DNA of 64,000 bases from Macrostomum lignano. Its lineage: Eukaryota. A model generated the notes under the pieces. It ran no database searches. It was not told the DNA's origin and worked only from the letters and a program-made list of their open reading frames with translations. The stretch is from assembly GCA_002269645.1 (NCBI GenBank), contig NIVC01001378.1:1-64000 (forward strand), written 5' to 3'. A program made the position numbers and the translations under genes. Below are positions 28,001 to 28,225 of this stretch, one piece after another (within the stretch, counting starts at the first letter, position 1; each line of letters opens with the position of its first letter).

Positions 28001-28225
28001 ATGAATTCACAGCGCCTGGTGCAGTTCTATAGCACAGTCATCGCACTGGCAATGTGGGCCACATACTACTACCATTCCGTGTCCGCCTGTTCGCACCTGC
28101 CAATTTCTACTGACGATTGCCAGCTAACTGGAGGATTCTGCGTGTTCCATAGCGATTGCTGCAACAACAATTGTTCGTGCGCTTGCAGAGACTATTGCAC
28201 AGGCAATTGCAGAGGCTGCTACTGA
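28001..28225 (+). CDS. Small secreted cysteine-rich peptide, inhibitor-cystine-knot / conotoxin-like framework (74 aa)
   Basis: MNSQRLVQFYSTVIALAMWATYYYHSVSACSHLPISTDDCQLTGGFCVFHSDCCNNNCSCACRDYCTGNCRGCY. Hydrophobic N-terminus, C-X6-C-X5-CC-X3-C core, 11 Cys in total, and ATTAAA about 30 nt after the stop. Confidence 0.7.
   Translation: MNSQRLVQFYSTVIALAMWATYYYHSVSACSHLPISTDDCQLTGGFCVFHSDCCNNNCSCACRDYCTGNCRGCY

Follow-up and report, generated by a model that had tools for sequence, protein, structure and literature searches.

A single-exon Macrostomum lignano gene predicted to encode a secreted peptide with an extended cysteine framework

Introduction

In spider toxins of the inhibitor cystine knot (ICK) type, a principal structural motif, C-X6-C...CC, is distinguished from an extra structural motif, C-X-C...C-X-C (PMC9881743). 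Among platyhelminths, the knottin-fold motif of UPF0506, described from Schistocephalus and Schistosoma, reads C-x6-C-x7-CC-x4-C-x9-C-x2-C-x6-C-x5-CC-x3-C-x4-C (PMC8400842). Here we analyse a stretch of 64,000 nucleotides of the flatworm Macrostomum lignano (contig NIVC01001378.1 of assembly GCA_002269645.1, positions 1 to 64,000 of the forward strand; hereafter the window), in which an open reading frame (ORF) at 28001-28225 on the plus strand encodes a 74-residue precursor that ends in a dense cluster of Cys residues. Two further systems bear on the comparison: nemertide alpha-1, a six-Cys peptide as against the ten Cys of the M. lignano peptide, and the I2 conotoxins, whose framework is C-C-CC-CC-C-C.

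A preliminary description of the window had presented this ORF as an intronless, secreted knottin or conotoxin-like peptide. On the basis of the analysis given below, we propose that the locus is an orphan M. lignano gene that is transcribed and whose single-exon coding sequence (CDS) yields the 74-residue precursor of a secreted, disulfide-rich peptide with an extracellular target. On balance we consider this account probable. The gene is already on record, as its sister copy elsewhere in the assembly is deposited in GenBank as an uncharacterised protein.

Architecture of the precursor

The complete CDS (28001..28225, plus strand) runs from an ATG through 74 codons to a stop in a single coding exon, and translates into MNSQRLVQFYSTVIALAMWATYYYHSVSACSHLPISTDDCQLTGGFCVFHSDCCNNNCSCACRDYCTGNCRGCY. 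That it is intronless agrees with the sister gene, which is likewise one CDS of 225 nt. The precursor falls into three parts: a putative signal peptide of residues 1-29 or 1-31 (28001..28093), delimited by hydropathy and the (-3,-1) rule; the sequence HLPISTDD (28094..28117), a short acidic stretch that would form a linker or an arm at the N-terminus and is identical in the sister copy; and a 35-residue domain with ten Cys (28118..28222), also protein-identical in the sister copy. Inspection of the linker HLPISTDD revealed no dibasic processing site.

The Cys domain starts right after ISTDD and has the framework C-X6-C-X5-CC-X3-C-X-C-X-C-X3-C-X3-C-X2-C-Y, or, in precursor numbering, C40-X6-C47-X5-C53C54-X3-C58 followed by the cluster C58-S-C60-A-C62. 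Both the head C-X6-C-X5-CC-X3-C behind a hydrophobic leader and the tail that had been singled out as unusual are present in the translation with exactly the spacing first described, and so are the ten Cys after ISTDD and the additional one (Cys30) near the predicted cleavage site. Cys thus makes up 29% of the last 35 residues. Five disulfides are possible within the domain, which has a net charge of about 0 and contains five aromatic or His residues (F, F, H, Y and Y).

The leader can be divided into an n-region (MNSQR), a hydrophobic core (TVIALAM(WA)) and a c-region (HSVSA(CS)). Its first five residues carry one positive charge (Arg5), and the core of 7-9 residues has a mean Kyte-Doolittle hydropathy of 2.0-2.5. 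By rule of thumb, these features agree with those of a classical secretory precursor, namely a charged n-region, an h-region of 7-15 residues and small residues at -3 and -1. Over 19 residues the mean is just 0.99; as judged by rule of thumb, such a value is more in keeping with a signal peptide that is cleaved off than with a stable membrane anchor. Cleavage sites that obey the (-3,-1) rule lie after residues 28-31 of the precursor; processing after Ala29 (VSA|C) would leave 11 Cys in the product, whereas processing after Ser31 (ACS|H) would leave ten, with Cys30 staying in the leader. The predicted released peptide is neutral to slightly acidic, and its charge therefore speaks against a classical cationic antimicrobial peptide.

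The flanks of the CDS hold several candidate signals. An ATTAAA (28256..28261, plus strand), announced in the preliminary description, follows 31 nt past the stop as a candidate polyadenylation signal and is kept in the sister locus; as the hexamer occurs 33 times on the plus strand of the window, it says little by itself. On the other side, a 13-codon upstream ORF (MCGCLASSDFAKL and a stop; 27963..28004, plus strand) ends in a TGA that overlaps the peptide start codon as ATGA, and lies in the same frame as a longer ORF at 27885-28004. The sister locus retains both the start and the stop of this ORF and differs within it by a single L-to-S change at 28000. For the upstream ORF to matter, the mRNA would have to begin upstream of 27963; in that case the ORF may form a termination-reinitiation arrangement, and with a 5' end farther downstream it would be irrelevant. 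Two candidates for the 5' end can be read from the sequence, namely a TATATT at 27926-27931 and an AG at 27955-27956 that is preceded by a pyrimidine-rich stretch. The ORF list also gives a GTG 'start' at 27965, which is an artefact of the bacterial start-codon table.

Cysteine density and codon usage

By itself, the length of the ORF is uninformative, because chance ORFs of 80-110 amino acids are common in the surrounding DNA. The density of Cys is not chance, however. Given the base composition of the window, a run of 35 codons would contain at least ten Cys with a probability of about 1e-7 per position, from which we calculate by multiplication that about 0.01 such Cys-dense stretches are expected over all six frames. 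Every other ORF of such Cys density in the window results from translation of a (TGTC)n microsatellite, so that the peptide ORF is the sole non-microsatellite one. Its codon usage fits the reading frame as well: the GC content at third codon positions (GC3) reaches 0.62 in frame but 0.40 and 0.52 when either alternative frame is read, and eight bona fide exons or ORFs in the window have a GC3 of 0.59. The ratio of TGC to TGT is 9:2 in the peptide and 35:10 in the reference exons of the window.

An origin from a transposable element or repeat was considered and rejected, as the 800-bp region around the ORF occurs only once in the window and runs collinear with the sister locus. A tblastn search of the window and the sister locus for paralogs of the peptide found none and returned only (CLSV)n microsatellite noise. 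The microsatellites in question, long (TGTC)n/(ACAG)n tracts at 2137-2513, 3017-4372, 5591-6028 and 36709-37365, read as (CLSV)n in ORFs of up to 477 amino acids and constitute a trap for Cys-pattern scans of the M. lignano genome.

A sister copy annotated from transcript evidence

The sister copy is the M. lignano hypothetical protein BOX15_Mlig006797g1 (PAA89122.1, UniProt A0A267GV01), which likewise has 74 residues and is 97% identical. It is encoded on contig NIVC01000163.1 of the same assembly, GCA_002269645.1, in a locus (L001) where its CDS occupies positions 10001-10225. The window and the sister locus have the gene order fucose pyrophosphorylase, peptide, Band_7 in common and are about 96-98% identical in long blocks of unique DNA. 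On these grounds the window holds a second copy, which may be a homeolog, may stem from a duplication, or may represent the sister locus itself in another haplotype or assembly. M. lignano is described as a neopolyploid species (PMC10733133).

From 27900 to 28300 the two loci align without gaps. Their CDSs differ at three positions: S3P and W19C, both in the leader, and, within the Cys domain, a synonymous substitution at 28174. As protein, the mature parts do not differ, the frame is intact, all 11 Cys are kept and the 12-nt repeat described below is the same in both. An initial impression of a conserved island at 27901-28300 was dropped after substitutions had been separated from indels.

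The gene models of the assembly that holds the sister gene were built exclusively from RNA-seq and transcript assemblies, with experimentally supported ends and ORFs called by TransDecoder (PMC5730564). As these models rest on RNA evidence alone, a transcript covering the sister gene very probably exists. This annotation also contradicts the expectation, voiced in the preliminary description, that the peptide would be missed owing to its size.

A 12-nucleotide triplication in the tail

The second part of the Cys framework coincides with a tandem repeat of 12 nt, present in 2.8 copies (28183..28216, plus strand). Its units TTGCAGAGACTA, TTGCACAGGCAA and TTGCAGAGGCTG encode C-RDY, C-TGN and C-RG(C), respectively. 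Tandem Repeats Finder (TRF) assigned it a score of 47 at 81% matches, and it was also flagged as repeat family D3. Codons were shuffled 500 times across the whole CDS and 500 times within the Cys domain alone, and the score was reached once and six times, respectively (p ~0.002-0.012). The repeat covers 34 nt and four of the ten Cys, and the remainder of the domain is non-repetitive. The C-X3-C-X3-C part of the framework, and with it the unusual portion of the tail, is thus a triplication of a small unit within the gene, joined to a head of the form C-X6-C-X5-CC-X3-C-X-C-X-C. As such, it offers a concrete small example of the extension of a Cys framework.

A bolder reading, which we put forward tentatively and regard as rather unlikely, holds that the peptide is a knottin-type molecule restricted to the genus or species, whose ICK-like core of 6-7 Cys was recently lengthened to ten by this triplication of a 'C-x-x-x' unit. 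If that were true, a micro-duplication creating a new disulfide framework would have been caught in the act, and the gene might have been born or radically remodelled very recently.

Comparison with known Cys-rich families

The peptide resembles ICK toxins and knottins in that a putative signal peptide precedes a small Cys-dense domain whose Cys1-4 fit C-X6-C-X5-CC exactly, with a C-X-C element thereafter. The principal motif C-C-CC-C-C with C-X6-C...CC is present. In contrast, the extra structural motif, expected in members with at least eight Cys, is incomplete, for there is one C-X-C(-X-C) cluster only; in place of a second C-X-C, the peptide has the C-X3-C-X3-C-X2-C that derives from the 12-nt repeat. 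It further departs from knottins in having ten rather than 6-8 Cys, and in lacking a dibasic propeptide, homology at the profile level and a confident knot model. Of shuffled sequences with ten Cys among 35 residues, 1.2-1.5% have an ICK-like start (C-X6-C...CC), which makes the spacing suggestive, yet the pattern was picked after the fact.

UPF0506 comes from the same phylum. Its members are secreted and rich in Cys, their function is not known, and the second half of their motif shares C-x6-C-x5-CC-x3-C with our peptide. The latter, however, consists of one domain instead of two, continues after Cys5 with X1-C-X1-C instead of x4-C, and does not match the Pfam model. Nemertide alpha-1 (6ENA), an ICK peptide of a spiralian (ribbon) worm, was the best sequence match in the PDB and has identical spacing over Cys1-Cys5. 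The match covers these residues and is driven by Cys, its E value of 0.32 (1.2 with the full precursor) is non-significant, and the nemertide chain has 31 residues; common descent is unsupported. With the I2- and O-superfamily conotoxins and the baculovirus conotoxin-like peptides, the M. lignano peptide shares a small, here putatively secreted precursor and the C-C-CC start of the framework, but not a conserved superfamily signal sequence; the match to PF17557 is below threshold, and the scanned contigs yielded no viral relative.

The family searches gave no assignment. At E<=10, the full and mature forms matched only Conotoxin_I2 (PF17557) in Pfam, with 7.2-9.7 bits against a cut-off of 27 and E values of 1.2-7.3, and the UPF0506, metallothionein and zinc-finger models found no match even at that threshold. 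A word-indexed search of 5.8 billion proteins returned the sister copy as its sole match. As a control, exons 1 and 2 of the stomatin gene in the window were submitted to the same search, which returned only a Paragonimus protein and missed the annotated stomatin of the sister locus. Because the word index can thus overlook near-identical entries, its negatives need the backing of an exhaustive search, which is reported in the next section. A comparison of low-confidence AlphaFold2 models of the peptide with the PDB by Foldseek gave 0 matches, and these models speak neither for nor against a knottin fold.

As the tests for membership failed or were uninformative, the peptide cannot be assigned to any toxin family, and a toxin or knottin identity amounts to a guess from the cysteine spacing. 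Of the original proposal, the ICK-type spacing of the first five Cys stands, whereas membership in a conotoxin, baculovirus, toxin or knottin family is borne out neither by Pfam nor by the PDB or the viral scans. The framework matches no curated family, and its class is that of the small secreted Cys-rich orphans, which are very common. The preliminary description had itself counted the lack of a transcript or homolog, the lack of a signal peptide, or a fold without a cystine knot against its proposal; here, homologs in other species were not found and the predicted models contain no knot, but a gene model built from transcripts exists and the leader is plausible as a signal peptide.

Model of the peptide and alternative explanations

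According to the account we favour, residues 1-29 or 1-31 would serve as a cleavable signal peptide that routes the chain into the endoplasmic reticulum, and cleavage after Ala29 or Ser31 would free a slightly acidic peptide of 43-45 residues. Oxidation of its C-terminal 35-residue domain, with up to five disulfides, could then yield a compact module that resists proteases. A knottin-like core may form in the N-terminal half of this domain (C-X6-C-X5-CC-X3-C), and it is possible that the peptide also works like a knottin, while the C-terminal half (C-X3-C-X3-C-X2-C) would have been gained via triplication of the 12-nt unit. Finally, a gland cell or an epidermal secretory cell would release the peptide, which would bind its target outside the cell.

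Several observations weigh against this account. An exhaustive HMMER search of 1.84 billion protein representatives detected no relative beyond the sister copy; among 2.9 million viral contigs, nine pattern matches were found and none was confirmed by tblastn; and a scan of metagenome contigs likewise turned up no relative. AlphaFold2, run on the single sequence, returned models of low confidence, with a predicted local distance difference test (pLDDT) score of 49.3 for residues 32-74 and 58.4 for residues 38-74, in which just a short bridge pair and a five-residue helix are visible. Tyr, Ser and Thr are abundant in the leader, and translation of the peptide might be disturbed by the ATG that lies upstream at 27963. 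Nor do the two copies testify to purifying selection, for which they are too similar and too young: substitutions amount to 3 of 225 nt in the CDS and 72 of 2563 nt in non-coding DNA (Fisher p=0.28), so that the identity of the mature part cannot be read as selection, and two of the three changes in the CDS are non-synonymous, both in the leader. The transcript of the sister gene is deduced from the annotation method and not from the reads themselves. An exact-sequence look-up of the protein encoded in the window retrieved no gene on record, and the full texts and supplements searched gave neither an expression value nor a tissue for Mlig006797.

Some of these points would equally be expected if the RNA from this locus were non-coding, or a read-through product between the fucose-pyrophosphorylase and stomatin genes, and if TransDecoder had called a chance frame of 74 codons whose richness in Cys stems from a TGC-rich cryptic repeat. 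The orphan status in protein, viral and metagenome searches, the many chance ORFs of 80-110 amino acids in the region, the upstream ATG, a constraint between copies that is not measurable, the tandem repeat within the Cys domain and the many fake Cys-rich ORFs that repeats of this genome produce all accord with such a frame. Yet the repeat accounts for 34 nt and four of the ten Cys only, in otherwise non-repetitive sequence, and a Cys density of about 1e-7 by composition is found directly behind a signal-like leader, in a frame whose GC3 and choice of Cys codons agree with those of genuine exons and which both copies keep intact with all 11 Cys. We therefore regard a chance frame as unlikely, though deserving of attention. 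A more pronounced doubt applies to an intracellular or membrane-tethered, metallothionein-like Cys cluster that binds metal. The high proportion of Cys in the last 35 residues and the elements CC, C-X-C-X-C, C-X3-C and C-X2-C are typical of thiolate clusters; metallothioneins, however, differ from the peptide, which has a hydrophobic N-terminal leader with sites of the signal-peptidase type, five aromatic or His residues within the Cys domain and, at E<=10, no match to metallothionein or zinc-finger models. We consider such a protein very improbable.

Two other explanations are specialisations of the favoured account rather than its opposites. A true ICK toxin or defence peptide, delivered with mucus or gland products to predators, prey or competitors, whose ion channels it would target, would explain why C-X6-C-X5-CC-X3-C fits the spider principal motif C-X6-C...CC (PMC9881743) and the second half of the UPF0506 knottin motif (PMC8400842), and why nemertide alpha-1 and, faintly, Conotoxin_I2 head the lists of matches. 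All these matches are driven by Cys and far below significance, though, and no knottin or toxin model of Pfam reached its threshold. The extra structural motif is half present, shuffles of the same composition produce the ICK-like start at the rate given above, the AlphaFold2 models show no knot, and the charge is neutral to acidic. Moreover, M. lignano feeds on diatoms, and we know of no venom apparatus in this species. A toxin consequently strikes us as improbable, and we rate only marginally lower a fast-evolving secretory peptide of reproduction, for instance a seminal-fluid product of the prostate gland or a product of the shell or cement glands. Its orphan status, secretory layout and small size would suit such a role, and many secreted proteins related to reproduction in Macrostomum are without homologs. 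Genes related to reproduction are reported to evolve rapidly in Macrostomum (PMC7336406), and putative seminal fluid proteins of M. lignano have been the subject of an in situ screen (PMC5977470). The identifier of the sister gene was not found, however, in the supplements of the positional RNA-seq study or of the germline and neoblast re-analysis, which may be incomplete or use other identifiers.

Should the secreted peptide be made and folded as proposed, its uncharacterised ten-Cys framework would enlarge the small number of disulfide-rich peptides that free-living flatworms have been reported to secrete. Since RNA interference, in situ hybridisation and transgenesis work in M. lignano, the cell of origin and the function are directly testable. 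Otherwise, the locus would be another orphan 'hypothetical protein' in GenBank, unsurprising to specialists.

Neighbouring genes and repeats

Downstream of the peptide and on the same strand lies a stomatin/Band_7 gene (28947-~32300, plus strand), the first intron of which begins after ...FIK. Its start codon at 28947 is 722 nt from the peptide stop, in line with the ~720 bp first reported. This adjacency on one strand is kept in both copies and is the sole basis for any link between the two genes. As M. lignano has polycistronic precursor transcripts that are resolved by trans-splicing (PMC5730564), peptide and stomatin may belong to a shared transcription unit. The stomatin introns contain arrays with units of 16 bp (29276-29592, AGTCATGGACTGGCTG), 58 bp (30814-31712) and 32 bp (32109-32457), the lengths of which differ between the window and the sister locus.

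On the other side of the peptide, very large minisatellite arrays occupy 16831-17648, 18454-23531 and 24629-26401 in or beside the fucose-pyrophosphorylase gene, with 18 copies of a 46-bp unit, a 20-bp unit (reported period 40/60) over ~5 kb and a 23/48-bp unit over ~1.8 kb, respectively. The stretch from 18 to 24 kb has a strong AT skew, and the minisatellites recur with different copy numbers in the sister locus. Farther away, a Sec24-like COPII gene (~4380-9570, minus strand) comprises exons with the zinc finger and trunk domains of Sec23/Sec24 and a Pro/Gln-rich N-terminal exon that holds a coding tandem repeat of 42 bp (9065-9384).

An ORF of 277 amino acids at 40325-41158 (minus strand) has, close to its N-terminus, a hydrophobic stretch resembling a signal peptide (…VALYLLLLIAIMPTNSLAS…) and matches no Pfam model; it may encode another lineage-restricted secreted protein. 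A group of ORFs that resemble remnants of mobile elements lies at 50595-51461 (plus strand), 52667-53753 (plus strand) and 61146-63161 (minus strand), and includes a reverse-transcriptase ORF (RVT_1), overlapping transposase-looking ORFs for which Pfam reports only a weak HTH_24 (E=0.0007), and an intact ORF of 671 amino acids devoid of Pfam matches. Identical short peptide strings at ~42.3/42.6 kb and 46.7/46.9 kb suggest a repeated element in that region. Other neighbouring coding features are an exon of the pancreatic-lipase family (Pfam Lipase; 47453-48103, minus strand) and a single long ORF for an RYBP/YAF2-type protein with a RanBP2 zinc finger (56597-57550, plus strand).
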